This document shows positions 5,730-63,223 of a stretch of 64,000 nt of DNA, in pieces. Position 1 is the first letter of the stretch. Every line of letters starts with the position of its first letter. Under the pieces are notes generated by a model. That model had not been told where the DNA came from. It searched no databases and saw only the letters and a list, made by a program, of their open reading frames with translations. Location of the stretch: NCBI GenBank assembly GCA_904063045.1, contig CAJFCJ010000032.1, positions 186,001 through 250,000 on the forward strand, read 5' to 3'. Made by a program: the position numbers and the translations under genes. Source of the DNA: Dimorphilus gyrociliatus. Taxonomy: Eukaryota > Animalia > Annelida.

Positions 5730-8098
5730 ATGAGATCAAATTTATCTAATAGAGAGTTCACATCGATATCTATAATTTCCAACGGCACGAATCGGCCGAA
5801 ACGTCAAGCAGTATGGAGGGTAAATATTTCTTTTTTGCAGAAAGTCTAACTATACCTTATCATTTATATTTGGCAATATTACACTTTCAAAAATAAAATA
5901 TAACTGAAAATTTATTCTTATTTTTAAATTTTAGTATTGGAATCGACTTTCAAGTTTACAGAGGAGTATTGTACTCGTAATGCTTATACTGGGTCTTATA
6001 TCAGCTATCTATCTCATTCCTACAATAAAAAAGGAATATTTTAGTTTAGAAGAGAGTCAAATCCAAGTTAGCAAATAGAAGCATATATTTATTAAATATC
6101 TTACTAATTGATGTACATTCAGAACGTAAAAGACAATATAAATAATAAAGAAAACGAAATATCTGTAAAAGAGAAAGAACCAAAAAAATTTAAAAAAAGT
6201 GTTGCAAATCGGCCAGAAGAAGTAAAGACAGTTAAGGAAAAATTACCTGAACGAGTACGTAAGACAATATATAAGAATATATTAGTTATCCTTTTTTTTA
6301 TGTCCATTTAGAACGCTGGGGAGAATGTACGTATTGCTCCTCCTATTTTACAAAAGAGACGAGGAAGGGGCTTAAGTGTTTGTACTTTCGTTTTTGAATG
6401 GCAATTCCTCAGTTTTAATAATCAAAACATTTATTTAATGCATAAATAGGATGAGAAAGAGCAAGAATTAATTAAAAAAGGGCCGCAAAATGAAAAACAA
6501 CGAGCAGTAGTAAATGCTTTCAAATATTCTTGGAAAGCTTATAAAACTTTTGCTTGGGGTCATGACGAACTTCGTCCTTTGACTAAATCGTCTAGTGAAT
6601 GGTTTGGTGTTGGCTTAACTTTAATCGATTCTCTTGATACTATGTATATAATGGGATTGCATGACGGTTAGTAAAATAGACATACTCTCTTACATATATT
6701 TATTATGATTGTTGTTGTTTAAAGAATTTAACGAAGCCAAGAATTGGGTTGCAAAGGAATTAACTTTCGACAAGAACAGAGATGTCAACTTTTTTGAGGC
6801 CACAATAAGAATCTTAGGCGGACTTCTTAGTGCATATCACTTATCAAAGGAACATGTATTTTTAGAGAAAGCTACAGACATTGGGGATAGACTACTGGGA
6901 GCTTTTTCATCTGGTAGTGCCATACCATACTCTGATGTAAATCTTAAGACTCGCATAGGTCATGCACCTCGCTGGGGTCCAGATAGTAGTGTATCAGAAG
7001 TAACAACTGTACAGTTAGAAATGAAAGATCTGAGTAAACTTACTGGTGATAATAAATATGCAGTTTGTATTTTCAAACTTTGCTGTAATATATGATTTAT
7101 TTCATTTACTATTTGTCTATCCTTATCAGACTGCCGTAGAGAAAATTAGCAATCACATCTTACAACTTGGTAAGAAAGATGGTCTGGTTCCGATGTTTAT
7201 AAATGCAAGAACTGGTCAATTTCGGTCAATGTCAACTATTACTCTTGGAGCCAGAGCTGATAGTTATTATGAATATCTTTTTAAACAATGGTTGCAAAGC
7301 AACCGAAAGAATGAAGTTATGAAAAATGAATATTTACAAGCTGTTGAAGGAATGAAAAAACATTTAATGCGAGAAACAGTTCCAAATAGATATTTGTATT
7401 TTGGCGAATTACTGGGAAGCCGAACTTTTAGTCCTAAAATGGTTTGTCTTAAAATTGCTTGGAAATGCTTAACTTATAATACTATAATCTGTATTCTGTT
7501 TATATTTAGGATCACCTCGTCTGCTTTCTAGCAGGTACATTCGCTTTAGCTGCTCACAATAATATTGGAAAAGATCATTTAGATCTTGGTAAGAGATTAG
7601 GAGAAACTTGCTACAAAATGTACGAGACAATGCCGACACATTTAAGCCCTGAAATTGCTTACTTTAACCAAGTTGAGGGTGCCACTGAAGATATAATTGT
7701 AAAACCAGCTGATACGCACAATTTACAAAGACCCGAAACAGTTGAAAGTTTAATGTACTTATACCGAATTACTGGAGATGCAAAATATAGAGAGTGGGGA
7801 TGGAAGATCTTTGAGGCCTTTGAAAAATATACTAAAGTCGAAAATGGCTACAGGTAAATGTTTAATTGGTATTAAAATAATAACAATTTCTAACAATTCT
7901 CTGTAAAAAAAAAACAGTTCAATCGACAATGTAAAAAATCCATCAAATGTGGGATATCGAAATAAAATGGAGTCATTCTGGACGGGTGAAACTCTCAAAT
8001 ATCTTTACTTGCTGTTCAGTGATGATGTCGAACTAATGAGTATTGATAAATGGGTATTTAACTCTGAAGCTCATCCTCTACCCATATGGAATGACTAG
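5730..8098 (+). CDS. MAN1B1: ER alpha-1,2-mannosidase (GH47), 9 exons (5730-5819, 5935-6066, 6123-6254, 6312-6377, 6450-6666, 6725-7062, 7130-7441, 7510-7853, 7918-8098)
   Basis: Type II membrane anchor ([27 protein letters not shown]). GH47 motifs [73 protein letters not shown] and NSEAHPLP. Phases are consistent; the exon 4 donor is less certain. Confidence 0.96.
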
Positions 8099-9221: not shown

Positions 9222-12200
9222 ATGTCTGCGACTGGCCTAGAGGAATTCTTAAATTCTGATTCCACTGACGATGGCCGTTTTGATAGTTTGGTGAGAAGTA
9301 GTACACCAACAGCCGCAAAAGAGATTCCTAGTAATTCAGTCAACAATAACCACATTGAAGAATTACAGAATGCTGAAATTGTGACAAAAAATGGTAATCA
9401 ACCGATAGTTGTATCAGCCAAGACTAACCCTGTACTAGTTAATGTCGGATCTACGAATGTTGGGACTCTTCCAACTAGTATGCTAGCTCAATCCAGGTCT
9501 CCTACTCCGAAAAAAGTGACTGGTGCAATCAGATCGCAAATTCAAATTGTCACTGTTGCTGGTGGAAATACGATTGGAAATAGGAATTCTCCAAATACCC
9601 CACAAAGAGTTTTAGCTCCACGGACTGTTACCAGTGCTCCAATAAGGATTGCACCACAAGCTAGGCAGCAGACTCCGGGACTCGTCTTACCTCAATCCTT
9701 GGGGCAGAATGCTCTCATAATGAAAAGTGAACAGGGACAGTGGGTTCTTCTGCAAGGTCAGACTGGTGCTCAAATTCAACAGCGTCCTGTTACCACAACA
9801 ACTGTTCGCGTAAGTTTTCCCTTAGGACACAAGCTCTGATTCTAGGATGTAGAATCTTTTTTAAAAAAAAAATGTAGAGACTCTACTCAATTGTTTATTT
9901 TAAAGAAAAAAAAATAGAATGTATGCAATTTCTTTTTTTATTCTGATTGTAATTCATCAACAACTTCCGAGAATCTTTATTCTTGCATTCTTGAAATTAA
10001 TGTTGTGAATGCGTTTCTGGATAGATATATTAAAGATTTTGTTGTGCGACTAAAATATAGTGCATGTATTATATTGTGTAGCAAAACGTCATGATGTCGT
10101 CACCAGTGCCCGCTCGAACGCAACTACCCGTCCGTTCCGCCGTCAATAGTCGAGTGAGTGTTGTTTTAATTAACAATTTTACTTTATTCATTTTTACTCT
10201 TTTAGTTATTTTACTTTTATTTTTTTACTCAGTTTTTTTTTTGCTAATTAACAATCTAAAGACCTTAAGCATCGTTAAAGTGACTGTTTTAATACGTGTA
10301 ATGTCTCTATAGTTTTTATATAGCATTGGTTAAATAACTAATTAATGGAGTCTCATTAGAACTATTCAACAAGGTTATCTTAGCTAATTAAATATTTCAT
10401 CCTTTAGTGAACAAAGTTCATTTAGAGTACCATGCCGTCAAAATTCCAATAAGTAACAAATGTCAGTTGGCGAAAACCCCTGAGGATATATATATATATA
10501 TATATATATAAATACATATAAACATATGTACCAAAGCTAAGTTTTATTTTAGTAATAACTTCCCTTGTTTATATTCTGATAAAATGAGGGGGTCAAATGC
10601 TGTATGCACATTCGTTCATTGCCCTAAGTTATTTACATTTATACCACCAGATGTCGTTAGTTCTTGGTAACAGAAAAAGAAAAGAGAGAGAAAGATTGAA
10701 TTCGAAAAGAAACTACACGGTTCTAGCAGCAGCAGCAGCAAAAAGTGTTAAATTTTTTTTACAAATACTATAAATATTCCATTGACTTTCGTAAAGTTTA
10801 ACAGAAACTTTAAAATAAAGAAAGATAGAAAAGAGAATTTTATAAAATCGTATATGCAGTTTAAATATTATTATTTCAGTGATTTTAACATGCTTTAACA
10901 AGATGGTCTTATTAATTAACTTTTGCTAGCAAACAAACAAACAAAAACTGCAGGCATTTGCATTTTGCCCAACGTTTTTTATTGAATAGTGGAATGCATA
11001 AATATATATAACTGTGAAAGAAACCTATTGTTTGCGTTTAGTTCGGTCTTCCACCACCCCAAGCCGCATCGATCCCCGTTTCTCATCAGCAACAACATGC
11101 AATGCAGACCAGAGTAAGTTGGACGACGAATTTCACTGCCTTTCGGCATAATCTTGCTAAAAAAATGTGTTTGTTATGCTTAAAAATCCTTTTATTTTTT
11201 TTTGAATGCCAAAGCTTCTGCTGTTCTTTTAAATGTGTTTTATTGTTTTGAGTCACACCAAAGTATCCTTTGTCATCTCAATTATTTTGAATTGTGAACG
11301 TTTAGCCTAAAGAAACTATTTGATTTTTTCTCTTTCTCTCCTATATAGATATATTTTAAAAAAAGATATTTTTTGATAAAGAATAACTATTTAAAAGAAT
11401 AGTAACAAAACTAAATCAGTAACAAATATGCTGAACGATCATAAATCTTAATATAAACAATTTACAAACAATTCGATTCGCTAACTTCTACTGATGTTAC
11501 ACAATTATCCATAAAAAACGACGTTTGTAATAATTTTAATAATTTTCTATAGCCTGTTACTGCAGTCGTCAGACAACAGACTCCGACTACAATCCGACCC
11601 GTTAGGCCTTCTCAACAAATTGTGAGTAAACGATTGAAATGGAGTTATTTACAAAACTATTTGATGCAAAAGTGTAACAATGTCTATTGTTTCAGCACGC
11701 AAGCCCAGCTCAACAGGAGAATATGAAAAAATGCAAAAATTTTCTCCAAACTCTTCTAAAATTAGCAGCGAACCAGCCAGAGTCTACTGTTAATAACGTC
11801 CGTCAGCTTATACAAAATTTAATAGATGGAATTATGAAACCCGAAGAGTTCACTCAACGACTACAAAGCGAATTGAAGTCCTCGCCTCAACCTTATCTAG
11901 TGCCTTTTTTAAATAAATCACTCCCCCTGCTTCGTAATGCCATGCATAATCAGAATATGATAATAGAAGGAATAAGGCCGCCTAGAACTATACAACAATT
12001 AAGTACACAAAGAGTAGTAAGACCAAATATAGCGGGTGGAAGCATCGACAAAGTTTCAGCATTATCAACGCTTATGAAGCCAATCCCTCCTACAATAGGT
12101 TCAACAAGTCCAGTTCGAACAAAAAACAAATATGAATCGTCGAAGTACGTTATCAAATTAGTATATATACTGTATATATAGTATATATGTATTTATTTGT

Positions 12201-13259
12201 CAAACAGAGGTTGATACTCTTTAGTAGTTTTGTTGAAAATTATTATTTATAACTTATATAGTTAGCTGTGTAAAAATGCAACCTCGGCTTGTCAAATGAT
12301 ATACAGAATATATAGTAGTACTGAATTAACTTTATAATCTATTAAGCATAGCAGGAGTAAGTGCTATAATAACATTTCTCTTTAGGGATGACGACGAATT
12401 CAATGACGTTGCTACTATGGGAGGAGTTAACCTTACGGAAGAATCCCGAAATTTAGCGGCGGCAAACGATTTAGGAACATTAAGGTCGTATAAAGACGAA
12501 GCACTGCTTGCCCAACCTTCCCTTCAGACTTATTTAAATTCTGTTATGAGAAAGCACGGGTTAGATACTGAGCAGGAACAATCCGATATAACAAAATTGA
12601 TCTCTCACGCCTGTCAGTTACGGTTAACACAAATGATGGAAAAGTTAATCGTACTTTCTGAACATCGGCTTGAATTATATAGGGGACAATATAATCTAGA
12701 GATGACATCGGACGTCAGGACTCAGTTAAAGTTTATTGAAGATATAGATAAAGTTGAGAAGAAAAGACACGACGAAGTTGAACGTGAACAAATGTTACGA
12801 GCGGCAAAAAGTCGATCAAAGAATGAAGATCCAGAGCAGGTGAAATTGAAGCAGAAAGCTAAAGAATTTCAGCAATTACAGGCTGAGGAGTTGCGACACA
12901 AGGAAGCAAACGAAACAGCATTGGCCGCCATAGGAACTAGAAAAAGAAAGTTAGAAGAAGAGAGTAGACTAGCCAATTCTCCAGTATCAAACTCGAATTC
13001 AAACGGACAAAATCGGGTTCCGCAAAATCTGGTTAGTAAATTATGAATATTGTTTTTTCGTTTAATAGTATAAAAAAAATCGGACAAAATAGATGATTAG
13101 AGATGATAATTTTGGCTGTTTTTATTAAGTTTTTCCTCTTTAATTTAGGCTCGAAATCGTAAGAAGCGTATTACAGCAAGAGAAGTTATTCATGTTATGG
13201 AAAATGATAGACATCTTAGCAAATCGAAATTATTATATAAGACGGCGTTGAAACAATAA
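9222..13259 (+). CDS. TAF4: TFIID subunit TAF4, 7 exons (9222-9809, 10082-10153, 11042-11113, 11553-11621, 11696-12144, 12386-13031, 13149-13259)
   Basis: TAFH/NHR1 domain (KKCKNFLQTLLKLA...FTQRLQSELKSSPQPYLVPFLNKSLPLLR), DDDEFNDVATMGGVNLTEE, histone fold with ELRHKEANETALAAIG, and C-terminal REVIHVMENDRHLSKSKLLYKTALK. The three small middle exons rest on splice signals and open phase-0 frames only. Confidence 0.95.
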
Positions 13260-14424: not shown

Positions 14425-17400
14425 TCAACTAGTTTGACTGAGCAACGTCTGAGAGACTTCGGAGTAAGAAAATCTGGCAGGTGCCAAACAATCAGTATGA
14501 TGATAATTAGTACCTGTATAGTCTGGCCAATCGTAGGCACTTGAACAAGTTGGCCACGATTTAACAACGGGTACTGCAATAGCACCTGATTTCTCTTTGT
14601 TCTTCGTTTGTATCACTGATGTCGCTGTTGTGGCGGACGCGGGCGATGAGTTTGAAGAAATGGACGTACATAGCGCTACAGCGTCGTCTAAACCGTTTTT
14701 CTGTTCGCAACAGGCGCTTCGAATAACTGTTGAGTGACGTTGCCGGGCGTCGTCGGCCGTAAGACCGTAATAGTTTTCGTAATGCTGTCGTCTCAGATCC
14801 AAACCATATCCATCAGTGTAAGGTGCATATCCGTAACCGTATTGGGAGGCGGAGAGAGGGTACTGTGAGTAATAGGCATTGTCGTAGACGCTCATATAAT
14901 TAGTCCTATAGATATCCGCTGTATCCAGTGGATAACTGGCATAAGGAGAATAAACCAAGTCAGACGAATAGCCGCTTGGAGGATATGGTGGGTTGTTTAT
15001 TGGAGCATACGTTGTTGGAGTTTTTCGTTTCCTACCAGTATGGAGGTATTCTTTTAGTTGTGCTTTAGGCTTTTTTGTTGTTGTTAGGGCAATATTTTTA
15101 TCATCCTCGAAAGCGTTACTCGAAGGATCCGAGTCGATTAAAGGATATGGTAATTTGAATTCGGTTCCACGTTTCGTTACTAATTCTCGTCCTTCGTCGT
15201 CTGTTAAGTGCCTGTGCGTGCACATAACATAATCGGGCTTGCTGTTCTTGTAGACAACTTTAGAACTGGATTGAAGCCAGAGCCATCTATAGTCCTTCGT
15301 TAGCATTCTATAGGCTATTAAACCGGAGCTACCGGTCTTAATCATCTCTTGATGAGCTGCAGCGTAGTAGTTGATGTCGTCGGGATGAATTAAATCGTAG
15401 CCCCCCTTATCCAAGAGATCTCTGTCTGAATAGCCAAAGAGCAACCGGCCTCTATGATCTATACTTAACGGTGCCATGTCCATTTTATGCTTTGTTTTGA
15501 AAGTGTAATCCCTAGGAGGCATATCCAGGATAGGCAGGGGTCCGAAAGGAGAACACATGGCGAATAACGCCACCTGTTGTTGATCTTCACCTCTTAAATT
15601 TTGACCAAGTAACGCTTTCATGTGGCCGGTAATTTCCAAGGTCTGAAAGTTGTGAAAAACAAGTTACATGTAGAGTTCTTTCAATTTCTCTTAATTGCTT
15701 TTTTAATAAGACGAAAATAAAGTAAAAAGAAGGAAATGAAGGAAAATTATTTTTCAAAAGTCATTAATAATTTTGTAGTCTCAATTAATTAGCGCCATCT
15801 GTTGCAAAAAAAGAACTTACGATGAAGCCGGAAGTATTATCCAGTAAACACCTAAACCGAACAGTGAACGAACGCGTCATGAGCTGGGAATTTTCGGCCT
15901 GCAAAGCATCGTGCAGAGACATGTCGTGTCGGTCAGCGGGCAATTGGGAACGCCAGTTGAGCTGACTCTTAAACGCCTCCCTATCTTCTGAATGGATCAA
16001 TTCGAGGGCGCTTTGATGTATAATGTCGGATTGGTGGAAGCCTAGATATTGTTCCACAGTTTTGGAGGCAAAGAAAACTTCGCCATCACAAGAGACAATA
16101 AAAAGGAAACCATTTAACGCTTGCAGAACACTGTCGGTTTCTGTGAAAGACGCTTCGGCTCCGCCGTAGTAGTGATGGTGGGAGGCGTACCTTTGATTTT
16201 GTAGCACAGCTGTATAGGGGAAAAAAAGAAAGCTGGTGCTAATTAATTGTATACCATAAAGTGTACATTAATACTGTAAACAGACATTTTCTTTCTTTCT
16301 GCCTGTCTGTCTTTCTTTCTTTCTTTCTTTCTTTCTCGCTTTCTTTCTTTCATTCATTTAGCTATTCATTCATTCACTCATTCATTCATTTACCCTTTTC
16401 CTCTCACAGACTACTTATCTATAACTCTCTTAACTAGTTATTTTTTAGCAGAGGATTTTTTGAGCTTAATAAACAATTACATTAAATATACACGTAAGGG
16501 AAAAACTAGGTCGTAGCGCATGCGCAGAATAGTTAAAGAGAAGAAGAAAGTGGCGAGGTCTAATTTAGGTATAAATAATTGAGTAGGTGCCTGTCACGTC
16601 ACGATAATAGACGCAGGCTGCGCCACAATAAATTATGTCGCTTCTATCTGTCACTCATACGATCGACGGAGGAAGAGAAAAAAATCAATAAAATTGGCGT
16701 GTTGTCGGCTTTTCGATGGAAAAAATAATTGATTTTAATTATACAACTTGGCTCTATATGGTGAGAGAAAAGAAAAAAAGGAAAAGAGAGAGCGAGAGGA
16801 ACGAGAGCGGCGATGCGCGTTAAACGCCTTAAATCAGAACGTCGCCAGGCCGGTCCAGTGGGAGAGAAGGCGATAAGCGACTAGTCACGCATAGATCAAA
16901 CAATTTTCAAATTTACTTCCATAGTTACCTATAAATTAAAAAAAAAGATAACTTTTTCATTATTCGCATGAGAACCTCTTGTAATTATATCGGCAAGTTT
17001 CGTTGAAGAGATTTTTTATAAGAATAACTTAAAAAATTCACACCAATAAGCAGGTACTTATAGATCTGGATATATACGTACAACCTACACTCGCAAATTG
17101 TCCTCCTCTCCCGTTCGACCTATACAAATAACAAGCAGGGCACAAAGAGAGGAGAAAGGAAAATAAAAGAAAATGGAAAGCCTGCTTATAAATGTAGGAT
17201 GAGTAGAAAGAGGGTATGAATTATTAAAAGCTCTCAGAAAATATTTCAAGCTCGACGATAGCAAAGAGAGAGAGAGAGAGAGAGACAGGTAGCGGCGGGC
17301 GTCAGAGGCGGCACACGAACAGATGTTCTTATGCTTAATTACAGCAATTAACCTGTCTTGATCCATGCATTCTTCATTAATTACTGCAAAGCCGGTCGCA

Positions 17401-32211: not shown

Positions 32212-33666
32212 ATGTCTACCGTAAAAGATTCAGCAATAAGAACGATTGTTTTGTACTTATGCTATTTTGCAACGGTAAGATTGAATAGAAAAATAAGTAT
32301 CCAATAGGCGTCTAATCTTTGTTCATTCTACACCATTCTAACTAAGCCTTTTAATTTGAATTTGTTTATAATACAGGGTATTCACGTGATTATTCTACCA
32401 TGTAGTCTGGTTGAAATTGGTAAATATACTTCATCGACAATCTCTGAAGTAACTCTATTGGTTACTCTAAGGGCTGTTGGAGACATCTTAGGTGGTTTCA
32501 TAGCTGTACCTCTACTTGAATATGTTAATCCGTATTTTTATATGACAATAACCGGACTAGTCGCAGCTATCTTCCAGTCAATCGGAATTTGGTTTAAAGA
32601 TATTACGATAATGGGATTATTTATGGGCATTGGTTCACTTGGTCATTCCACTTTAATTATTGGTTCAAATGCTGAAGTGTTACGAGAATGGGACACAAAA
32701 TCAGCCGGATGGATACAAGGTTTGCACGGATCGTTTGCTGTAGGTGCTCTCGTTGCACCTTTAATGATTCAACCTTTCCTTACAACATCAAAACTTGCCA
32801 AACATGTTGTCATTCAAAAAGCATTTTTGATTGACGGTGCAATTCTACTATGTGTTTGTGTATTTTTATTTACTGTATGGCTATACTACTACAGGACTAT
32901 TAAATATGTTAGTGCTCACCAAAGCTCTTTAAAAGAAATGTTCTTTAATGTAATAAAAGCAATTGGATTTAATAGGAAATTCTCTTTCATGGTCGTTGTA
33001 ATTCTCTATTTCATATTGGAAGTCGGAATGGAAGCAACGTCTATTAGTCTACTAAGTCACTACTGTGTTCACTATCTGGCCTGGAGCGAGCACAAGGCTG
33101 CTCTACTAGTCTTTGTTTTGACATTATTCTATTCAGTTGCCAGATTTTTCAATGCAGGAATAACAAGATGCTTGAAGACAACTATTCTCCTGGTCGGCAG
33201 TTTCCTTATTTCAATTTTTTCCATGTTTCTATTATCGTTTAGCTATAAGCATGAATCTATCGTTTGGATATCTGTAGCATTGATGGGTGTTGGAAGGGCA
33301 GCGTTATATCCTGGTTGCGTTGTCTTTGTCGATCATTTTCTGCCTGTTAGACAGTCTTTAGGCATCGTCTTTCACCTAAGTGCAAGTATAGGAAGTTTAA
33401 TATTACCTCAAATCGCAGCTCGTATTGTCCAATCATACGGCTATCAGTGGTATGGAGTTGCCCTATTGGTTATAACTTCTCTCATGTTTATTTCATTCAA
33501 TATACTTATTCTGATAAGTAAAAATATGAAACCTCAAAATTATGTCTCCGACGATCTTAACGAAAAAATCATTATGTCCGAAGAAAAGAGTTCAAAGAAT
33601 GAAACAGACGAAGCGAGTATCCATTCAAGTATTAACGACACTAATATCCCTTCATACTCCAAATAG
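32212..33666 (+). CDS. MFS transporter, MFSD4/Na-dependent glucose transporter-like, copy 1 (exons 32212-32274, 32377-33666; in-frame alternative ATG at 32176)
   Basis: About 12 hydrophobic segments. MFSD4-type motifs include WIQGLHGSFAVGALVAPLMIQPFL and YFILEVGMEA. Donor ACG|GTAAGA and acceptor atacag. Confidence 0.88.
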
Positions 33667-33856: not shown

Positions 33857-34674
33857 TAGTACCGTCGGTAAGTCACTGTTACACCTCAAAAAAATAATAT
33901 TTTCTTGATTTTTTCTCTTTCCGTACTTAAAGAATGAAAATGAAGGATATTATTATATTTAATAATAGTATTTTATGTGCATACCCTTAGCTTCTACAAC
34001 TGCCCTAAGCCTTCTTTCCATTGTCTCATATAAGAATTGAATTTCCAGTTCTGAAATTTTAAAAAATTTCTCTCTGAACATCTCCCACAGCTCATCCTTG
34101 TTTCTTGGCTTATGTGCCATTAAATGTTTTTTGCATATGCCCCATATTTGCTCAATAATGTTCAGGTCTGGGCTGTTTGCTGGCCATGGATCAAGTGTTT
34201 CCACTTCCTTTCTTTTGAGGTACACTTTTGTTATGGATGCTGTATGACAGCTAGCCCCATCCTGCTGGAAAATTTCCCCTCTCTTATAATTTGAAACAAG
34301 ACGACTGCTTAAAATTTTGATATAGTCTGAAGCTGTCAAGCAATTAGACACTAAAGTTAGGTCCCTATCTTTGTCAACTGTTAGATTACACATAAATGAC
34401 CTTAAAATCTGGTTAAAAGTGACACTACTCAATGGTCAGGGTAAATTTTTGAACATAACTGATGCTTATGCTTTTCCATAAATAGGTCTATCACTTTAAA
34501 GCGATCGTATTTCGGAAATTTAAAATGAAAAACATATATTTTCTTTCTATAATGATAAGAAGAATATTATTAAATATAATAATATCCTTCATTTTCATTC
34601 TGTAAGTACGGAAAGAGAAAAAACCAGGAAAATATTATTTTTATGAGGTGTACAATGACTTTTCACCGATATTG
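33857..34674 (-). mobile_element. Internally deleted Tc1/mariner DNA transposon (~818 bp) with ~110 bp imperfect TIRs and TA target duplication
   Basis: 33857-33967 is the inverted complement of 34565-34674, for example acacctcaaaaaaataatattttcttgattttttctctttccgtactt vs aagtacggaaagagaaaaaaccaggaaaatattatttttatgaggtgt. TA flanks are at 33855-56 and 34675-76. ORF 33959-34432 carries FQQDGASCHT and WPANSPDLNIIEQIW (second D and E of DDE) but lacks the DNA-binding domain and first D. Confidence 0.93.
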
Positions 34675-35280: not shown

Positions 35281-36747
35281 ATGAAAGAAAAGAAACACGT
35301 TGTTCTAAGAACATTTTCAATATACGGAATTATTCTAGCTCAGGTAAGATGAAGAAATTGAACTAATTAACTAGTTTATTGTTATTATTATCTAATTTCT
35401 AAAATTCTCTTGTAGAGTCTTTACACTATCTTGCCATCATATGCCTTAATTGAATTACAAAACTATACTAATTCAACATTATCATCTATTACCAATGTAA
35501 TTACTATAAAATCATTTGGAGGAATTACTGGGAGTGTTCTAGCTGGATATCTTCTGGAAACTGTTGATCCATACTTTTTTATGTCTATATCTGGAATAAT
35601 TGCAACTATTTTTCAAGTAATAGGAGTATATTTTCATCAAGTTGTGTGGATGGCCATATTTTTACACATTAGCTGGATGGCCTCGTCAGTGATATTCATT
35701 GCAGCTAATATAGAAGTTTTAAGAGAATGGGATAAAGAGGCCGCAAAATGGTTACAAGGTCTCTACGTAGCCTTCGGTATTGGTATTACTTTAGCTCCAA
35801 TTATCATTCAACCTTTCCTAGCAAAAGATATTGGACCCGAAAATGTTCAAATTCAATACTCTTTCTTAATAAGTGGGGGATTATACGCGCTTTCGTCTAT
35901 AATAGTATTTGGAGTTTGGTTATATTATTCAAGGGAAATTGTTTTTAAAGGAAAAGAAAAAAAGAAAAGCTTTACAGAAAAAGTACAAACGCTGAAAAAA
36001 GAGTTTGGATTCAATCGGAAGTTATTATTCACGATATGTGTTTTCCTCTTTTACGTCCTCTGCGTGGGCATTGAATACGGTATATTTAGCCTACTGAATC
36101 ATTTTGTTGTAATTTATCTGAAATGGACATCGAAAGGAACAATTTATTTAATACTTTTAATGTCTGCGTGTTTTGCTGCAAACTCATTCTTTGGTGCATT
36201 ATTAGCAAAGTATATAAAAGTAACAACATTATTGGTATGTTCATTCTTCCTCTGCTTCTTTTCCATGATACTGTTGTTATTCTTTAAAGATGAGAAAACA
36301 ACTTGGGTAGCAGCTACTGCATTTGGTTTAGGTATATCCATTATCTATCCATGTGCAATAGTGTTCATTGATAAATATATAGGTGTTAGGAAATCTTTAG
36401 GCTGTATTTTCCATTTAAGTGGACAAGTTGGAGTCATAGTTTTGCCTCAAGTAACAGCAGATGTAATGGAACTTGAAGGTTATCAGTGGATGCCTATTTT
36501 GATGTTAGTGTATATTTGCTTGAATTTTTTGATTTTCGGTATAATGATATGGTTAAGCTATGGATTAGAAGAAATTGATTATTCTTCCTTGGAAAAAGAA
36601 GAAGAGGAAAAATCCGAAGATAAAATCAGTTTCGCTAAGGATATTAATAAAGTTATTTTGAACAATAACAAATCTGAATTTACGCCAATAATTTCAAATT
36701 ATAAGAAAATTTCTTATGATGTGATCCAAACTATAATAAATCATTAA
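35281..36747 (+). CDS. MFS transporter, MFSD4/NaGLT-like, copy 2 (exons 35281-35343, 35416-36747)
   Basis: Paralog of copy 1 (LLETVDPYFFM vs LLEYVNPYFYM; EVLREWD in both; LAPIIIQPFL). It has the same 63-nt first coding exon and phase-0 intron. Confidence 0.88.
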
Positions 36748-42826: not shown

Positions 42827-42863
42827 CTCTATTCGCGTGCATAGCACGCTCGTAAATCATAAA

Positions 42864-43822
42864 ATGGAGACCATAGATTTCTCTTTCACAGATAGTTTTT
42901 ACTGGGAAGATCCACTAAGTGTCGACTTTGGATGGAATTACGAAGAAAACTATATACCCTGCCAAGAATTAGAAAAGAAAGGAAGAAAACGTGTAAATCA
43001 ACGGCACGCGGCAAATTTACGAGAGAGGAAACGTATGAGAACGATTAATGACGCCTTTGAAGGACTTAGGGCGAGAGTTCCGGCCGCTGATAAAAAATTA
43101 TCGAAAGTCGATACCCTAAGGCTGGCAGTACGTTATATACAACATTTAGCAAATATAGTAGAAAGCTGTGGAGGTACGAATAATAAAAAACAGAAGAAGA
43201 CGGAAACGAATGGCAAAGTGATTTTAAGATGCTCTCAATATCAACAAGTTCAAGGTACTTTTAGTTTTTATTAGTCTTTTACTGAAAATTTCAAGACTGT
43301 TTGATGTCGAAACGAGCAGTTAATTCAGGCTACTTATAAATGTCACGCTATATTGATGAAATGCACCGATATATGAGAAATGACCATATTTCTCTTCCGA
43401 GGCCATTTTGGAGTAATTTTCACTTCAATATTTAAGATAAAATACTATGTAGGTCGGCGACACGTGAACTTGATTACTATTCAAATTTTTCACGCATTTC
43501 AAAGAAAGACAATTAGTTAGACATTGTAAAGAATAACGTTACTTTATATACAAAAGTAGGGTAGAGACGCTTCAGCACTAAAAAAAATCCATTAAGCGTC
43601 ACTTTGAAGGTGGTTGCAATTTTCAAAATCAACAAAGAATCAATTTCAGCAGGTGAATATCCACTATCATCCGTCTACGGACATTCTTTATCGTGGACGT
43701 CCGAAAAAGAGATTGAAGAAGATCATTTTAGTGAAAGGAAAAAATCTGCAACATTATGGATACCGGAACAATTATGCCCTGAAGAACAAGCCGAACTTTC
43801 TTCGCAATCCCTCCGCGCTTGA
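42864..43822 (+). CDS. Ptf1a-like bHLH transcription factor, divergent paralog (exons 42864-43254, 43653-43822)
   Basis: b[31 protein letters not shown]...[19 protein letters not shown], then KVILRC. Exon 2 carries [10 protein letters not shown] and ATLWIPE, the two PTF1a RBPJ/Su(H)-binding Trp motifs. Phase-1 intron. Confidence 0.9.
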
Positions 43823-49152: not shown

Positions 49153-50783
49153 TCACAAATCCAAAGTTGTATTTAAAAGCGATGAACACTCTGTAGATAC
49201 CGGCTTCATTCTTGGATCTTCAGGTGTCCATATTTTTGCAGTCATTGTGTTATTCGGACCCAAACTAGATTTCTTTTCGTCTGTCCACGATAATGAATGC
49301 CCGGTAAGGGGAGGATAACCGTAGTGTTGCTGATCCGAGTCGGGTACTGTTGAAGGATTATTGAAAATTAATTAGCCGTGTGTTGACGACGTGTCATTGG
49401 TCATGCGCCAATTGTGCTGCCAGTCAGCGTCATAGCCGGATTACAAACAAAAGTTTTGTTTGTTATCGTTAATGAGAAATTGATGAATATTATTTGATAA
49501 CGCATGACTGCTGACTAAGTGGTCTTTATAATTTAATTGGCCATTTAAAATCAACTTAGGAAAACAACATATTTAGAATTATTCTTAAAATTTATTCAAA
49601 GCGCTCATCCTATTCATATCGTTATAGGCTTTATTACACTTAATGCAAATATATCTCATTAATTATTTATTACTTATGCTTGTAATTTATTTCTCTTCTT
49701 CTAGAATGAAAGCATAAATCAACAAAAACAACAACATCAACAATTACGCCCCCTAGCATAGTCGATTTTTCTCTATTTACAGATAAGCTTTGGGCGATGA
49801 ATCCGTCGTATTATGTAATAATTTAAGAAGAGCTCTCTTATCCTTTTTACTATGTGTACTCTGAATTTCCTTTCGGTAATTATATTCAGCACGCGAATTC
49901 ATTGTTAATCGAAGATTACTCTACATTTACCTTACAAACAGCCATACAATTATATACGTTCGCCAAGTAATTACACACGTTCACTACACTAACCCGAACG
50001 GAATGTATAGTAAAAATTGATACAATTTCTCCGAAGAAATACCAAGTTTCTTATGCCATCATATCAAATAAGAACAATACTTTTTAACTATATAACCAAA
50101 GATTTAATAAAAACATAATTAAATTAGGGTTGGTTGCACACACATACCCATTTATAAAACTCCTCTTCTACATATTAGAGGGTCGAACTTACTGAACCGA
50201 GAAATGATCAAAGCATTGGGGGGAAAGAAGAAGATAAGATAACTTTTAATATTTTATTAATTAAGTTAAATATTTGAGTGATAAGGATAAAATTTACCTG
50301 AATAAATAAGATCTACTTACTTTTGTTATTTCATAAATGATACAAATTAAAATTTCTAAATTGTTAGGAAAACTAATGGGGAAATGACAAGGGAGCGCAA
50401 GAAATAAAGAAAACAATAAGAAAGAGAAAGAGTGCAGGGAGGGGATTGAAGGTTTTACCTGAATGACAGTGGATTATAACCTTCCTTGGCTGCTCGGCAA
50501 CTCTAACAGCTTCAGGGGAAGTTTCATCAGATTGTATAAGTTCGGATAAGAAGGAAATGTATCCAATGGCCAAACGTAACGTATCAACCTTTGACAATCT
50601 TTTTTCATAAGGTAAAGTAGGAATCCTGGCCCTGAGACCTTCGAATGCTTCGTTTATACTTTGCATTCGTTTTCGTTCCCTCATATTAGCTGCTTGACGT
50701 TGATGTTGCTGCTGTTGAACGCCCTTCCGTTTCCGGCGTCTTTTTTCTTCACTAAATTCACCGTTTGTTAGGAAATCGCGCAT
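49153..50783 (-). CDS. PTF1A: Pancreas transcription factor 1a, canonical copy (exons 50783-50459, 49346-49153)
   Basis: [52 protein letters not shown], then KVIIHCH. Exon 2, read by hand on the minus strand, has [10 protein letters not shown] and [10 protein letters not shown]. Phase-1 intron. Confidence 0.96.
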
Positions 50784-54485: not shown

Positions 54486-54896
54486 TCAATCGTAATAACA
54501 AGCAAAAACGATTGATACAGCAACAATTGTTTTATTTTCGTATTTGTGGCTTACGTACGAATCGTTTGACGGTCCCCATAAACATCTGGAAGCCATTTGT
54601 CCTTGATTTCTCTTTTCACCGATTGTTGTATGGACAATTAACTTGTATCTCTCAGAAACTATATCCTTGACCTTAGATTTGATACTTAAGCTAATTTCAG
54701 TTGCTAGACTAGCGGCTTTATCGGCTTGATAATCGTTATTCGATATGAGATCAGTCATAACATCTTCGATAATAGTTTGAACCTTCTTTTCGGAAAATCT
54801 TTTAAAATCACCGTTGTTATTAGATGAAACAGTCTGCTGAGATGGCTTAGACTTTCTTCGCCTATCTTCCATTTGAGCTCGCGTGGGCCTCCTCAT
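54486..54896 (-). CDS. Tctex1-domain dynein light chain (TCTEX1D/DYNLT family)
   Basis: RYKLIVHTTIGE...MASRCLWGPSNDSYVSHKYENKTIVAVSIVFACYYD matches the Tctex-1 fold C-terminus. An acceptor-like tcttatag just upstream (54901) suggests a further 5' exon. Confidence 0.88.
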   Translation of the reverse strand: MRRPTRAQMEDRRRKSKPSQQTVSSNNNGDFKRFSEKKVQTIIEDVMTDLISNNDYQADKAASLATEISLSIKSKVKDIVSERYKLIVHTTIGEKRNQGQMASRCLWGPSNDSYVSHKYENKTIVAVSIVFACYYD

Positions 54897-55427
54897 TCTC
54901 CTATAAGACTATTGAAAGAAGAAATATAGATCTAAATATTTATATATTGATAAAGAGAAGACATATTTATCCTGTTAATAGACGAAAAGCGGGGGAGAGA
55001 GAAAGAGAGAGGGCGACTGAGGAGAGGGGGCAGAGGACTTGAATAGAGAAATGTGTAATTGACTAAAGAATAGAACTTGTTTGGGAAAGGATTTATAAAT
55101 TTATATACTGTATATGTATATATATATATATAGTATACTATATATATAGATAAATGACATATAATATATATTTATATATACATATGATACGATATGTTCT
55201 ATATATTTATAGAAGGTATACGAGTTAATGGCAAATATTTGTTTCATTTATTGAAAAAGCTTCGAGAGCTGTTTATTATAGTAGAGTTATAATTAGTTTA
55301 ATATTTTTATAGCTTAATCATGTCGAGTTTAAAACAAATAGGAAAAAGAAACGAGTGAGAGAAAGAGAGAAGGGAGAGGGGGGGGAAGGTCACGAACTGA
55401 AAGAGGAAGTAAAGGAGAGGTGTAGGT

Positions 55428-55434
<7 letters not shown>

Positions 55435-55473
<39 letters not shown>

Positions 55474-55588
55474 AATATATTTATCCATAAAGAGCAAGAG
55501 TGAGAGAAAGACATACATATATACATATATACATGCATACATACATACATACATACATACATACATACATACATACATACATACATAC
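55435..55588. repeat. Compound (AG)n and (CATA)n microsatellite
   Basis: (AG)n at ~55435-55469 and (CATA)n at ~55536-55588. These generate the spurious MCMYV ORFs in the track. Confidence 0.95.
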
Positions 55589-58097
55589 ACATACACACAT
55601 GCAGGTAGAGAATGAGAAAGGGAGGAAGAAAGAAAATAATAGAGAGAAGAAATTTAATAAATTGATCTACTAACTCCTTTCCTATCCTTCTCGCTCATTT
55701 TCCGTTCGATATCTAAGTAACCTGTAGTCGATACAACCGATTCGAGCGCTGTATATCGTGCAAACACTATTTTTTTGTAGTCATAAGCCTATAAAATATA
55801 TCACATGTACTTATAATCCAACCGTAAAAAGGCTAGCTTGCATACTATTGTTTATTAACATAAATAATGCTATCAAGTTGAACATTAGATGTAATTAATA
55901 ATTCAAATATTTCATTTAATTCGTAGAATAGGCAAGTTGAAAATTCAATCTTTTCCCATTGTTTAATGATAGACATACGGTACATAAAACAAACTAAAGT
56001 TTTTCAATATAATAATAATTAAACTTAACAAAGTCATTTACGAAACAAAAATTACTTTCTCTCTCTTTATTAAACACTATATATATCGATCTAATAATCG
56101 ATGTATATCCCTATATGTAATAAGTTATTTTCATAATAAGTTCTCTATATGTATAAATCGAATTTATTTGTTGAATCAAGTACGACTATATTGATTTTAA
56201 TTGATTCATCAATCTGTTTAATTATTTCTCTTGAAAGAGAAGATTTATTATGAATATAGAATATATACTATACGATATACATTCTTAAATATATACTGTA
56301 CACACATATGCACGCAGGGTGTTTATTCTATTTTACAGTTAGCTACCCATCTCTCAATCTATCATTCATTCATTCTAACATTCATATATTCATGTATCCA
56401 TACGCTCCACACAGTGAAATTTCCTTCTTCTGTGTTTCCTCTTTTTAGTTGGGCATGTTAAAAACATGTACAATTACTACTTAAAAGATAATTAATACAC
56501 CAGCTATTGTACTCCCTTTCAAGATTCCTTAAATAATTACATGATCCATTGTTAATAATTTGTTTAGTATGTGGGCGTTAAATATATATGTAAATATATG
56601 CTGTGATATATTAACTAAATGAGGATAATACATTTTCAACATTCTCTCCCCCTCTCTCTATCTATCTTTCTCTATTATTTCAATTGTTTGAATCTTTTTC
56701 AAAAAGAAATGAAATTGTTGCTAACTGAATTGAATGAGACAAAGGGAATGTGGCAATAATCAATGAATATTTCTCTCATTCTCTCTCTTTCCTTATATAT
56801 ATATATATATATATTTCTTGTATACAGTTATATATATATATATATAAACAGTATTTATATATACACCCACCCTCAATTTATCAATAACCTAACGACCTCT
56901 ACACCCTATTGCCTTAGTAAGTGCATATTGAAAATACCCAAAGTGATATATGTCATTACATATTTCCGGTTTTCTTTATTCCAACTATTTATAACCAAGA
57001 GTATTTCTAGAATTTGTTCATTCAATACGCTCTTTTCTTAGTCTTCCCTCTTTTCTCTATCCTTCGTTTTTAATTTCCTAGTATAGAAGAGAAGAAAAAA
57101 AGAAACCGAATCGATAAGAAATTTTCGTCTAATTTGGCGGTCCCCTAGTAATTTACGATTATAAAAGGGGATTAGGTTCAATATCAGGTTAATCCGAATA
57201 GGAATAACTTAAGAGAAAGTATTTATTGGGCCTAGGTACAATTACCTATTAATCAAATGAATTTTCCCCAATATATAAAGTTTTTTGGAAAATACTTTCT
57301 TTCATTAAAAGTATCAGAGAACATTGTCTATACATTCATTCATTTATTCTTTCTCTTTTCGTCTCTTCCTCCTTCCCTCTCTCTCTCTCTCCCACTCTCT
57401 TTGAATTGAGTAATAAAAAAAAGAAATGAGAGATATTAATGAAAAATACTTTTGTTATCTTTTTCTTTTTATTCATACTAAATAAATAACAAAAAAACTG
57501 ATATGATTAACAGTAATTCCTTTCATTTCTTAGATTCGTTTGTAATCTCTTTTTATTGTCTAATTTTATTTTTACAAGTCCTATTCAGTTTCTTCTTAAT
57601 CCGTTAACTATACAAGAAATCCCCTAATCCGCCAGCGTTGATTAATAGAAAACAATAAATGTTTACCTGTGTAAAATAATAGAGCAGAATCCCGGCTTAT
57701 CAGCTAATTATCAGTGTTTATATAGAAGTAATATGGACGAACTTTTAGAGCAAGGCCGAACTGAGCATTTTAACTGAATAAAGTAATCAATTAGCAAGTA
57801 CTACAAGCTTTGATGTTTTGTCTAGAATGTTTAATCGATAAGTCCCTTATTGAATTCCAACCCGTAAAATACTACTAAATGACAGTTTATAATGGGGAAT
57901 GCCAATCCAAAAAACATAGTATTACTAAGCATTGCGCGTAGCGTGATTTTTTTCTTTTTTTACCCTTTCTCAATGATAGTAAAAATAAACATACAATGAA
58001 TCAGATCTATTTTTAGACCCCTTTGACGCGTTTCTAAATTTTATATATAGTCGGCAGCACTGGCAGTGACGCTTCAAAAAGAAGTGGACGCCGAAAC

Positions 58098-59203
58098 ATG
58101 AAGAAAACGATGCTCATTGCACTTTTGTATTTAACTACAGTTATGGTTCTTTCTGGTTTGTTTTATTTCTGTTTCATATCTTATTTTTTTTATATGGAAA
58201 TAATTTCCTTTTAAAACACTTTCTAGTTATTTCCGGTTTTATTTTCCATCTTTTCTTTTTTCTGTTTGTACATATATATATATGCGTATTTTTGGTTGTA
58301 ATTGTCTTTCTTTCTCTTTCTCTTTCTGAAAGAATTCAGTAGAAAGACATGTTTTTCATTCATTTGTATTTAAAAATCATTGGAAATATGTCAATTTTTA
58401 ATTTCAATATTACTTTCAATTGAAGTAGAATAAAGAAAAGAAAGGAAAAAAGAGAAAGTTTACTATATAAAGATCATTTATAAAAAGTTAATAATCGAAA
58501 GAGAGAAAAAGAAAGATATAAAAAAAGAAAAAGGGAAAAAAAAGCAGTTGAAAAATTATCCTTGTCTTTTTTCTTCTAATCTTTCTTTATAACTCTTTGT
58601 CTCTCTCTTTTTTCTATTTGTTCCAATTTTTTCATCTATCCGTCTTTCTCTCTCTCTCTTCCATCTCCGCATCTTCCATTTCTTATTACTCATTCAACAG
58701 AAAATTTATTAAAAGACTACAAAGGCGGACAATAAATCGTACAATTGTATAAATTATATAAAACAATTTGGTTTGACTTTTTGATTAAAAGAAATTGTCT
58801 AAATTGAAATATTGTTATTTATTTTTCCCCAGACAAGAAAGAAATGATAGAAGCATTAGATAGATTGCGAACGGCAAAACGGTAAAGTATAAAATAATTC
58901 GCTGAAGCATGTAAATGACTGTAAAGTTTAACGATAACATAAAAACAAAAACAAGTTTATGTAAATAATGGATCATGTTTGATATATATTGTATATATAT
59001 TGTATATACACAATTTAAACGTTTATAGCGTTTATTAACAATATACATTTAAATATAATACTGTCAACAGGACGAAATGGTATCTGAAAAGTTTTTGCGG
59101 TTTAAGTGGAGAATGGTGCGGTACGTGCTGTGAAGGTTACACTTGCAAATGTAATTTATGGAACGCTAATTGCCGATGTCAGAAAAAATTATTTTGGGGA
59201 TGA
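58098..59203 (+). CDS. Agatoxin-like/agouti-like knottin neuropeptide precursor, 3 exons (58098-58155, 58833-58881, 59071-59203), 79 aa
   Basis: Spliced product MKKTMLIALLYLTTVMVLS-DKKEMIEALDRLRTAKR-TKWYLKSFCGLSGEWCGTCCEGYTCKCNLWNANCRCQKKLFWG*. It comprises a signal peptide, a KR site, an 8-Cys knottin with CxCNLWxxNCxCQ and a terminal WG amidation signal. TATA at 58042, aaacATG context, GT-AG introns in phases 1 and 2, AATAAA at 59316. Confidence 0.92.
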
Positions 59204-62106
59204 AAAATTGATGATTATTTATTCTATCCTTTTTCCTTTTGAACGTTTTTTCGTTCTATCATCGATTTTCTTTTTTGGAGAAAATTTTTTCGAAAAGCAG
59301 GAAAAAGACAACTAAAATAAAAGAATACACAGATAAAGCATATATTCAGTATACATTGCCTTTTTTGTTCATGTACTGTATATAATTCAATATATATACA
59401 GTATATATATATACATATATATACTGTATATATATATGCATGTATGTATATTTCTAAAGAATATTTTATGCCTTTAAATGAATATACAAGTATATAAAAA
59501 AGTGTATATAAAGTATATGTAGAATAAAGTTTAGTTTATGATTGTACTAAGTGCACTGTTCATATATTCCCCAAGAGCATAAAATGTTCCAGAAAGATAA
59601 ATTTGCTTTGCATTTTTTCCACTTAATTGTTTTCCTCTGATGGGCTGATATCTTTCTAAACTACACTCTGTCGACTTTTCTTCTATATAACTGTCTCCTT
59701 ATTTTTCTCACCTTAACCCCTTTTCACCTTTTGTCTAGTTGTTTCAAATTTGCTAAATTTTCTCCTTTGATATGAAATACACATTAGTTGTTATAGTATT
59801 ATTAAAAGATCGGGATTATCTATTTCACTTCTTAACTATATACCATTTCCCAATACCTCTTATTAAAGATTTTCCCTTTGATTTGACAATTTCATGGAGA
59901 CGGATAGAAAGAGAAAGAACAACCTTGGCAACGTGGCTTCTTTCCAGATATTTTTACTGTAATTATCTTTCAAGAAGAGATTTTGATTGGTACAAAATAC
60001 ATCAATTAGACTGAATAGAATCTTTGTTAAATCTACGATATTTGGGAATTGTTGAACGTGACCAAGTTCTATAGAGTTAAGGTTGTAAACTAGCATTTCT
60101 ATGAATCATTATCAAAAAACTTCCATCTTGTTCGAACACTTCGCTTTATCATTCTCTCATCTTTCGCTCTAGCAGATTAATTAAGAAATTTCAAGGAACA
60201 CCTTTATTGTTTCTTTTAAAAGGTTAAATAACAAAAGTTATCTATAGATAAATAAAAACTATATACAGTATACAGTATAAGGATAAAATGAATGCATAAA
60301 AAATACACTATAGTTTAAAATAGAACACATGTATATATATATCATATATTTTTTTAAATGCAGATGACCAAAACAGTTGATTATTGTTCATAAGAAGATT
60401 AATAATATCGTGTAATCATAACTTGTTATCTAATTTTTACTTATCACTTCGTTATTTAAGAAATTCATTAAAAAAAAGAACAAATTAAATATTTGCAAGT
60501 TTAAAAAAGACATTAAGAAAACAAATGCTATAAATAAATACATACAGTATATATATATATATATATAATTTGTATATATACTGAATATATATTAGATTTA
60601 AGTATACAAAAGTTACATTTCTTGTAACACTCTCTCTTCTCCCAATAGACTTGTAAACTCTGCCAAACTAATGAAAGAAAAAAGTCTGTCCTTGACACAG
60701 TCTTATATTATTCTAGGCCAAAGTAATTTTTCCAGTAGAGTAGGCTACTGATTATGATCGTCAACATATATTTTAATTGGTAACTGTCATTTAATTATCT
60801 TGTTTTTTCCTCCTTTCCAGCCTTCCTCTTTAATATGAGAGATTTTTCTACGCCCACGGAGAGGATAAAAATTGAATTATGACTAATAATAATCTATTTC
60901 GATACTTTTTTTTGGTTATTTTAATATCTAAAGAACTTTTACCTCAGGCTTGTACATCTTCTTCCAATCTTAATATAGAGCAATTAGAAAAAAATAGGAA
61001 AATAAAGGAAGTAAACTCTGTAAGATAATATTCCCAAGCGCTTAATACAGATCTAAGTAAAAAGACAATACATACAGTATATATATACATATATTCTGTG
61101 TATAAATTGCTTAATATCTCTTTGTATTGGTTTTTGTTAATGCTTTACATTGAATTTAGTATAGTTAATCATACGGCAAACCGTAGATAATAGGGTCTCT
61201 TAGTCTTTCTGCGTCAGACGAGTACAACAAGATTTTTAAGTGACTGGTAACAACTCGCACGTGTATTTATATTGGACTAGTACAATATACTCTAAAGTTC
61301 TCAGTATACAAGTGTACGTTCATATCTCTTGCATAACCTTTTAAGGTCAAACTTGTACTTTTTATGTACATTTCAATGAACTAATCTAGATTTTAACCTC
61401 TTTCTTTTCACTTAATAGGAATTTTCTTGGAAGTATGACACGAGTAAAGAAATATTACTATATTAACTTTGTAAGAGACGCTAAAGCATCAATTTGATGA
61501 CATTTTTACGGATAAATCACAATATGTGAGATGCATACTATGTAAACAGAGTCCGTCCTTCTTCCTGTTTATAAATAATATATATATTTTCCCACTCGCA
61601 ATAAACATTAATGTAATAAAGACTGTTGTTTGTTAATTATTTCCATCTTTTATTCTTAGTTGTAAATTATATATACTATACTACAAGAGACAACAGCAAT
61701 TTGAATGCTACGTGACGAACGAAAACAACACTTTCTTCAGTCAGTTCTAAATATAGGCCTTTATTTTTTAGTTAGTTTTTATTGTCAATATTATTCATTA
61801 AGAAGGAGGTTCGTGTTTTCATTCTCTCCCTTTTCTTGTTTCGATTAATGTTTTAAAATATTAATAGCAATAGAGAGATCATTATAATAATATAATGTAT
61901 TGATTGTAGTTAAATATTCATAAATTGATGTTTATTGATATGTAATGTTCGATATCTTCCCTTTAAGGTTTATTTACCATCAATGTATGAAGAATAGGTA
62001 ATATATTGAAATTCTATGACATGATTTTTTATTGAGATGACCGGTTTATTGAGATTTGTACACACACTCAGAGTTTCACTCTTTGTGCGTAGAGCGATAA
62101 GACGCT

Positions 62107-63223
62107 ATGGTTAAACTTTGTCTCACTTTCAGCTTTTCGTTCGTTAATTTCTTTACAATTTGCATAAAAGCCGATCAAGGTAGATTATTTTCTTTGATAA
62201 AAGTTAAGGAACCATTTCCACAACCCCAATCTAAAATAAATCTTCCGGGAGCGACACAAAATCCAGGGCTGTCATGCTTCAGTTACTGCAGATCGAGCTT
62301 GAAATGTTCATTTGTAACTTTCTCTTCGTCGGAATGTTTTTTATATGATAAGGATAGTTTGGCCGAAACCTTTTATCAGACGAATTCTCTTCAGGGAGAA
62401 AACTATCAATTGGCTTACATGAGTTTGTTCAATCCAATTTTTTTAATATTATGTTTCTATTTTCCCTTTATATTTAGCACTTCCTACACTGGTGGACGGT
62501 AGTACAATTATAAATACAAACTTTAAAGATGTGAAACCCGGTATGTTAAATACCAACTTGATGTTAACCGATTCAAGCAGTATCATGTTAACGTATCGAG
62601 TTGAGTGCGATGGTCGAACTAGAGGAATGGTAACCGGAATAGGCGGTATAAAGTTTTCCGAATCAGATTTAGTTTTACAGAATCAGTGTCGAATTAATTA
62701 TCAGAATTCTTTAGCTTCGTGGAGATCGTCAAATCCTAAAACGTTTTCCATCGAGTTGTGGTATAGGCCTAAAGATAATTTACATAGTAGCTATATTTTC
62801 TTATATCCAACTTTTTTTGGTATACTGAATGGAGAGAACGCAACTGATAAAATAGGACCAGCTTTCTTTATAGAGTCGTGTCCTAATGGAAAAATTTTCT
62901 ATACGAATAATAAAACGCTTAATTACGATAATACAATTCATCATTTGATTGTTACAGTTGATTTTAATTTAAAGGTAGTGAAACAATACCTGGATGGTGA
63001 GGAAGTTTCTTCACACGTTCTCTGCGATTATCCAAGCATTATAACTCGTCGTCAATCGATTCAACCAACCCTGCCTGGGGCGCCCAATGGTTCGACTAGA
63101 GATTATAGAGGAACAATATATTCTTTTCGATTGTTAAATAGAATATTACAAAGAGTAGAGATAAAACAGCTGAGTTTTCTCTATCCGAACGAAGTACAGC
63201 TTATACCAGAAACGCACCGCTAG
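62107..63223 (+). CDS. Secreted PAN/Apple + LamG (concanavalin-like) domain protein (exons 62107-62422, 62478-63223)
   Basis: Hydrophobic N-terminus, then C-x3-C-x5-C-x9-C (CFSYCRSSLKCSFVTFSSSEC). A 55-nt phase-1 intron joins in frame to a domain with FSIELWY, HHLIVTVD...QYLDG and YRGTIYSFRLLNRIL, typical of LamG-like folds. Confidence 0.72.

Follow-up and report, generated by a model that had tools for sequence, protein, structure and literature searches.

The stretch of DNA considered here, referred to as the window, comprises 64,000 nucleotides from the miniature annelid Dimorphilus gyrociliatus. Our subject is a small three-exon gene between its positions 58042 and 59321, which would encode a secreted, cysteine-rich peptide precursor of the CCWamide/agatoxin-like peptide (ALP) family. 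The origin of the window was established by two matches. A 438-codon MFS open reading frame (ORF) within it is 99% identical to DgyrCDS14293 of D. gyrociliatus, and contig CAJFCJ010000032.1 (assembly GCA_904063045.1) is the same as the window over 21,467 nt with zero mismatches. Window position 1 lies at about 186001 of that record and the gene region at about 244042-245321. The host is an annelid, hence a spiralian; a first-pass annotation, made from the sequence alone, was thus right in its guess of a spiralian peptide.

All elements of the gene lie on the forward strand. A TATA-like run, read directly at 58042-58049, about 50 nt upstream of the ATG, is a possible core promoter. The coding part of exon 1 (58098-58155, 58 nt; ATG at 58098-58100) holds 19 codons plus 1 nt and encodes the entire predicted signal peptide, recognized by eye from a Lys-Lys n-region, a hydrophobic core, and Val and Ser at -3 and -1. 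Intron 1 (58156-58832, 677 nt, 24% GC) extends from a GT donor at 58156 to an AG acceptor at 58831-58832 behind a pyrimidine (T/C) tract, and contains A/G- and C/T-rich runs; such low-complexity runs are the only tandem repeats inside the introns. Exon 2 (58833-58881, 49 nt) specifies the charged propeptide, which shows Ala-Leu and then Leu-Arg-x-Ala-Lys-Arg close to its end and stops at Lys plus the first two bases of the Arg codon. Intron 2 (58882-59070, 189 nt, 22% GC), bounded by a GTAAAG donor at 58882 and an AG acceptor at 59069-59070, interrupts this cleavage-site codon, which is split into CG and G at 58881/59071. Exon lengths of 58 and 49 nt place intron 1 in phase 1 and intron 2 in phase 2, and hence account for the divided Arg codon. 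The coding part of exon 3 (59071-59203, 133 nt including the stop) supplies the last base of that codon, the mature 42-residue peptide (59072-59197), the Gly that would serve as amide donor (59198-59200), and TGA (59201-59203). An AATAAA at 59316-59321, 113 nt past the stop, is a possible polyadenylation signal. An Rfam scan of 55000-62000 gave no matches.

We dropped the TATA and AATAAA elements as support for the gene. Both are present, as the first-pass annotation had reported, and both carry little weight at frequencies expected by chance in AT-rich DNA: TATA-like runs are common in flanking DNA of about 28% GC, and the window contains 246 copies of AATAAA where 213 +/- 14 are expected.

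Translated exon by exon, the gene yields a 19-residue hydrophobic N-terminus, a 15-residue charged piece, and a 43-residue Cys-rich piece ending in Trp-Gly-stop; by exon lengths, the precursor amounts to 79 codons. Direct reading and this translation confirmed to the base the three in-phase exons of 58, 49, and 133 nt proposed earlier, and the signal peptide, the propeptide ending in Lys-Arg, the 42-residue peptide, and its Gly were all found as quoted there. The mature peptide carries eight Cys in the framework C-x6-C-x2-CC-x4-C-x-C-x6-C-x-C, of which the second loop alone is atypically short; a Trp sits within the Cys6-Cys7 loop, and the chain ends in Phe-Trp-Gly-stop, with C-terminal amidation predicted from the Gly. 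As far as its sequence tells, the gene is intact. It is also hidden from the ORF list, as the first-pass annotation had remarked, since the exon-3 reading frame stays open for just 54 codons and no ORF of at least 60 residues covers any exon in frame, those that overlap being on the other strand or in another frame.

Searches were made exon by exon, and comparisons with published CCWamide/ALP sequences are counts made by eye from the text of the papers. Spiralian CCWamides have been described as orthologues of arthropod ALPs (Thiel et al. 2021, PMC8557429). By the definition given there, the precursor of a member is short and consists of a signal peptide, a propeptide that is not conserved, a basic cleavage site, and one C-terminal Cys-rich peptide. 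This peptide contains eight Cys, carries an aromatic residue in the interval from Cys6 to Cys7, and ends in an amidated aromatic residue. The window gene has this precursor layout, the eight Cys, the aromatic residue between Cys6 and Cys7, and an aromatic-Gly end that predicts the amide. Sequence similarity points to the same family. The exon-3 peptide matched Pfam PF02819 (Toxin_9, omega-agatoxin type) over residues 18-40 with 23.0 bits (E = 1e-4), above the curated gathering cut-off of 21.3 bits, and the Pfam scan gave nothing else of note. A HMMER scan of 1.84 billion representatives returned four matches, none of them from D. gyrociliatus and none bearing a family name. Two library proteins, P0003 and P0004, contain ALP-type Cys-rich domains that align pairwise to the exon-3 peptide (BLASTP to P0003, E = 3e-8), and the nearest library proteins (P0003, P0004, P0008, and P0009) all match Toxin_9.

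Gene structure adds a further line of evidence. The conserved CCWamide/ALP gene has three exons, with the last intron between the second and third base of a basic cleavage-site codon (PMC8557429). The published splice tables (supplement 20, PMC8557429), which cover Lottia, Crassostrea, Notospermus, Phoronis, Tribolium, and three Centruroides genes, share one order: a signal-peptide exon, a phase-1 intron, an exon of 10-23 residues, a phase-2 intron, and the mature-peptide exon. Even the five-exon Notospermus CCWa-2, with two extra introns, keeps phase 1 for the first and phase 2 for the last (PMC8557429). The window gene has phase 1 followed by phase 2 within the basic codon, a pattern identical in 10 of the 10 published splice patterns compared. 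On these grounds, we consider it highly likely that the gene belongs to the CCWamide/ALP family. The earlier proposal of a spiralian ALP neurohormone accordingly finds backing in the annelid host, the precursor layout, the Cys framework, and both intron phases.

Spiralian CCWamides (Platynereis dumerilii, Crassostrea virginica, Lottia gigantea, Phoronis australis, and Notospermus geniculatus; PMC8557429) share the layout with the window gene, as well as the three exons, the phase-1 and phase-2 introns with the second inside the basic cleavage codon, the CC-x4-C-x-C-x6-C-x-C framework from the CC pair on, the Trp in the x6 loop, and the Trp-Gly end. The exon-2 motif (Ala-Leu ... Lys-Arg) also resembles, by eye, that of the Phoronis, Crassostrea, and Lottia CCWamides and of the D. 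gyrociliatus paralogue treated below. In contrast, the Cys2-Cys3 loop spans 8-17 residues in the part of the published spiralian set compared and only 2 in the window gene, whose precursor is shorter (79 codons) and passes from Gly straight to the stop without a trailing basic residue. Arthropod ALPs (Tribolium ALP and Centruroides U8-agatoxin-Ao1a-like; Sturm et al. 2016, as cited in Thiel et al. 2021, PMC8557429) agree in the three exons, the phases, the split basic codon, the eight Cys, the C-x-C-N-L-W-x-x-N-C-R-C core, and the aromatic-Gly end; they differ in a 6-residue Cys2-Cys3 loop and a longer tail past the last Cys, and represent the ecdysozoan branch of the family. Among solved structures, omega-agatoxin IVA/IVB (PDB 1iva, 1agg, and 2ndb) were the best sequence matches for the exon-3 peptide (E ~0.04), and the same inhibitor cystine knot fold is expected of both. 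Unlike the window gene, which resides in a non-venomous annelid and specifies neuropeptide processing signals, these toxins are spider venom components acting on prey calcium channels, and the likeness is confined to the Cys-rich core.

Similar domains turn up in other protein contexts. P0003 (176 residues, from a Logan assembly), a precursor of ALP type, bears two Cys-rich domains of the Toxin_9 type in a single chain, in contrast to the single-peptide precursors that define the CCWamide/ALP family. In addition, P0001 (2096 residues, ENA) and P0002 (1022 residues, Haliotis cracherodii XP_071094808.1) each present six to eight separate stretches resembling the CCWamide/ALP core, which suggests that large proteins in molluscs and other animals also use the knot domain in repeated form.

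A CCWamide of D. gyrociliatus has been published before. The precursor list of Martin-Duran et al. (2020, PMC7854359, supplementary file 5) contains one "CCWamide/Agatoxin-like" entry, Locus_18800.0_Transcript_1, an 88-residue transcript-derived precursor that carries an "old transcriptome" identifier and no gene-model id; this "CCWamide-like" sequence was first published in Kerbl et al. 2017. In the portion of the supplementary files of Thiel et al. (PMC8557429) available for comparison, this transcript was the only D. gyrociliatus CCWamide sequence found. It shows the same layout as the window gene, with a propeptide end of Arg-x-Arg-Thr-Ala-Lys-Arg, about 27 of the 43 mature positions identical by eye, a C-x6-C start, the family framework from the CC pair on, and Gly followed directly by the stop. 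The two differ in the Cys2-Cys3 loop, of 6 residues in the published precursor versus 2 in the window gene, and in the end of the chain, Phe-Gly (a Phe-amide) versus Phe-Trp-Gly (a Trp-amide), the latter being closer to the name-giving C-terminus of the family. Since the list holds a single entry and that entry differs in sequence, the window gene is a different gene and a second, unlisted paralogue. Searching the window with each exon by tblastn revealed no further copy or tandem paralogue. The 2-residue loop is the shortest in the portion of the published family set compared, in which the others range from 5 to 17.

Public protein sets do not appear to contain this gene either. A word-indexed protein search with the 54-codon exon-3 frame (residues 12-54 scored) gave no candidate among proteins of 30-94 residues, and the HMMER scan of 1.84 billion representatives uncovered no near-identical protein of any length. 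The searched collection includes the NCBI proteins of assembly GCA_904063045.1, so the gene seems to lie outside the public protein set and to be unannotated, a conclusion for which these two protein-collection searches are the basis. The under-annotation suspected in the first-pass annotation is thereby borne out at the level of large protein collections.

We regard an intact three-exon CCWamide/ALP precursor gene, present as a second paralogue in D. gyrociliatus, as the best explanation of the locus, with a probability of roughly 0.85. This is a published family and not an unrecognized class: CCWamide naming is long-standing, the orthology with ALPs has been in print since 2021, and D. gyrociliatus already had one listed copy; the gene structure and the lack of a known receptor or function are likewise on record. 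What is apparently new is the second, seemingly unannotated paralogue, with its unusually short loop 2 and true Trp-amide end. We further propose, tentatively and at slightly less than even odds, that the window gene, and not the published Phe-amide transcript, is the true Trp-amide CCWamide of D. gyrociliatus, and that the pair embodies a split into two signalling peptides. With loops 2 of 2 and 6 residues and different C-terminal residues, the paralogues could differ in the cells that express them or in their targets.

Structural modelling is compatible with the family assignment. For the exon-3 peptide, AlphaFold supplied with an alignment of four relatives gave a model with a mean pLDDT of 71.9 and a beta-hairpin at residues 23-27/34-38. 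Foldseek against the PDB gave 32 matches, nearly all of them knottins, i.e., spider, cone-snail, and remipede toxins, tachystatin, ASIP (2kza, rank 2), and AgRP (1mr0, rank 27). Every E-value exceeded 1, in line with the small size of the domain. The model is thus consistent with the inhibitor cystine knot fold, short of proof.

If the gene is translated as proposed, the signal peptide would be removed cotranslationally at entry into the endoplasmic reticulum, in line with general precursor processing. The peptide would fold oxidatively into an inhibitor cystine knot with four disulfides, a prohormone convertase would cut after Lys-Arg, and the C-terminal Gly would be converted into an amide. 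Peptidergic neurons would release a 42-residue Trp-amide peptide by regulated secretion. Our working guess is that it might act as a diffusible ligand of a membrane receptor still to be identified; a second possibility, by analogy with the spider-venom relatives, is direct modulation of ion channels. In non-venomous protostomes, members of the CCWamide/ALP family are regarded as neuropeptides (PMC8557429; 2026 review). No receptor was known for it in 2021 (Thiel et al. 2021, PMC8557429), and according to the 2026 review neither receptor nor function has been determined, in keeping with the earlier suggestion of a peptide without a known receptor. The window gene is likely expressed and functional.

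Several observations weigh against this interpretation. The published list of D. gyrociliatus precursors, built from three transcriptome assemblies plus gene models (PMC7854359), does not include the window gene, and neither the 1.84-billion-representative library nor the word-indexed collection yielded a protein with the exon-3 peptide. Given these two absences, expression of the gene may be weak, rare, or absent altogether. Neither the exon-1 donor (GTTTGT) nor the tract before the intron-2 acceptor is strong. A 2-residue loop, shorter than in any family member within the published set compared, does not guarantee correct knot formation, and the structure model is of moderate confidence only, with no significant Foldseek match.

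Some of these points would also fit a silent or decaying duplicate, i.e., a young, intact-looking paralogue of the expressed CCWamide-like gene that is hardly or not transcribed. A BLAST search with the listed paralogue should have brought the window gene into the transcriptome-based list, and its absence there is the main argument for such a duplicate. Its absence from all protein collections searched, the weak exon-1 donor, and a loop-2 deletion that is unusual against all relatives in the compared part of the published set also speak for it. We nonetheless deem it unlikely. The open frame, the four splice dinucleotides, both intron phases, the Lys-Arg site, the eight Cys, and the Gly-stop are all kept. 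The mature peptide has diverged from its paralogue by about 37% and yet retains every functional element, which argues for selection. Moreover, the published paralogue itself lacks a gene-model id, and tiny peptide genes are easily missed in D. gyrociliatus.

Alternatively, the gene could serve outside the nervous system, as a secreted knottin with a glandular, defensive, or antimicrobial role. Relatives have been recruited to venom in spiders, and the antimicrobial tachystatin is among the Foldseek matches. The Lys-Arg site, the Gly amidation signal, and the gene structure are, however, those of neuronal CCWamide/ALP precursors, and the use of the family as a neuropeptide in non-venomous protostomes also makes a non-neuronal role very improbable.

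The first-pass annotation had in addition called the peptide agouti-like. Both groups are Cys-knot peptides, the C-terminal domain of agouti/AgRP is likewise a small, disulfide-knotted secreted ligand, and the ASIP and AgRP structures matched at the level of fold, with nonsignificant E-values. About 30 unrelated knottins scored alike, however. At the sequence level, where agouti kinship was rejected, the exon-3 peptide exceeded the curated threshold of Toxin_9 but gave no match to Pfam Agouti (PF05039) with E-values of up to 10 allowed, and under the same limit no agouti or AgRP chain was listed by the search of PDB sequences. Membership in the vertebrate agouti/AgRP family, or direct homology to it, is therefore scarcely credible, and the label denotes resemblance of fold class only, with no evidence of kinship.

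That short open frames in AT-rich DNA fell into this arrangement by chance, as the brevity of every exon and the chance frequency of the TATA and AATAAA signals might bring to mind, deserves almost no credence and is in our view already refuted: the family Cys framework (C-x6-C-x2-10-CC-x4-C-x-C-x6-C-x-C) occurs once across the six frames of the window and in none of 200 block-shuffled windows, the Pfam match exceeds its cut-off, both intron phases and the split Arg codon agree exactly with the family, and the exons are richer in GC (33-39%) than the two introns (22-24%).

CCWamide/ALP is among the few protostome-wide neuropeptide families still without a known receptor and function, and it is the endogenous counterpart of a spider-toxin class. 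With a further paralogue of distinct structure, a miniature model annelid contributes one data point on the diversification of the family; this leaves the overall picture of the family unchanged and makes the receptor question no more testable. The gene is also one more example of how very small peptide genes with several exons slip past both ORF lists and automated annotation. If the window gene were indeed the Trp-amide CCWamide in a split between two peptides, D. gyrociliatus, with its 73.8-Mb genome and very small nervous system, would offer a compact system to describe where a protostome-wide orphan knottin neuropeptide is made.

The remainder of the window is ordinary compact animal gene space. 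Ordinary neighbours are an FDF-domain protein (2870-3589, reverse strand), a GH47 mannosidase (6709-7531, forward), TAF4 with its TAFH plus TAF4 domains (11687-13046, forward), a PAS-domain protein (14425-16207, reverse), and a PAN/laminin-G-like secreted protein (62107-63223, forward). Two MFS transporter ORFs form a tandem pair on the forward strand, the first at 32356-33666 and the second, of 438 codons, at 35431-36747 (L001 10001-11467). Between them, on the opposite strand, lies a DDE_3 transposase-like ORF (33959-34432) that is probably a DNA transposon remnant. The public model DgyrCDS14293 (290 residues) spans just 34% of the uninterrupted 438-codon ORF, which by itself matches the MFS_1 profile nearly end to end; over-splicing or truncation may affect the annotated model. 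About 7 kb separates two bHLH transcription-factor exons, one at 42837-43274 (forward, annotated as a 187-residue HLH gene) and the other at 50373-50783 (reverse).

Nearer to the peptide gene, a complete 136-codon ORF for a Tctex-type dynein light chain (PF03645) occupies 54486-54896 of the reverse strand. The contig look-up returned no gene record for it, although the protein exists in the collection as entry P0006. An 89-residue relative, P0007, is 82% identical and comes from a Logan assembly, which could represent a related dinophilid and a possible source of orthologues. TA, GA, and ACAT microsatellites extend over 55094-55600 and 56794-56863. They give rise to spurious Cys-rich ORFs at 55329-55598, which are probably the source of the other open 43-codon stretches with at least eight Cys in the window.

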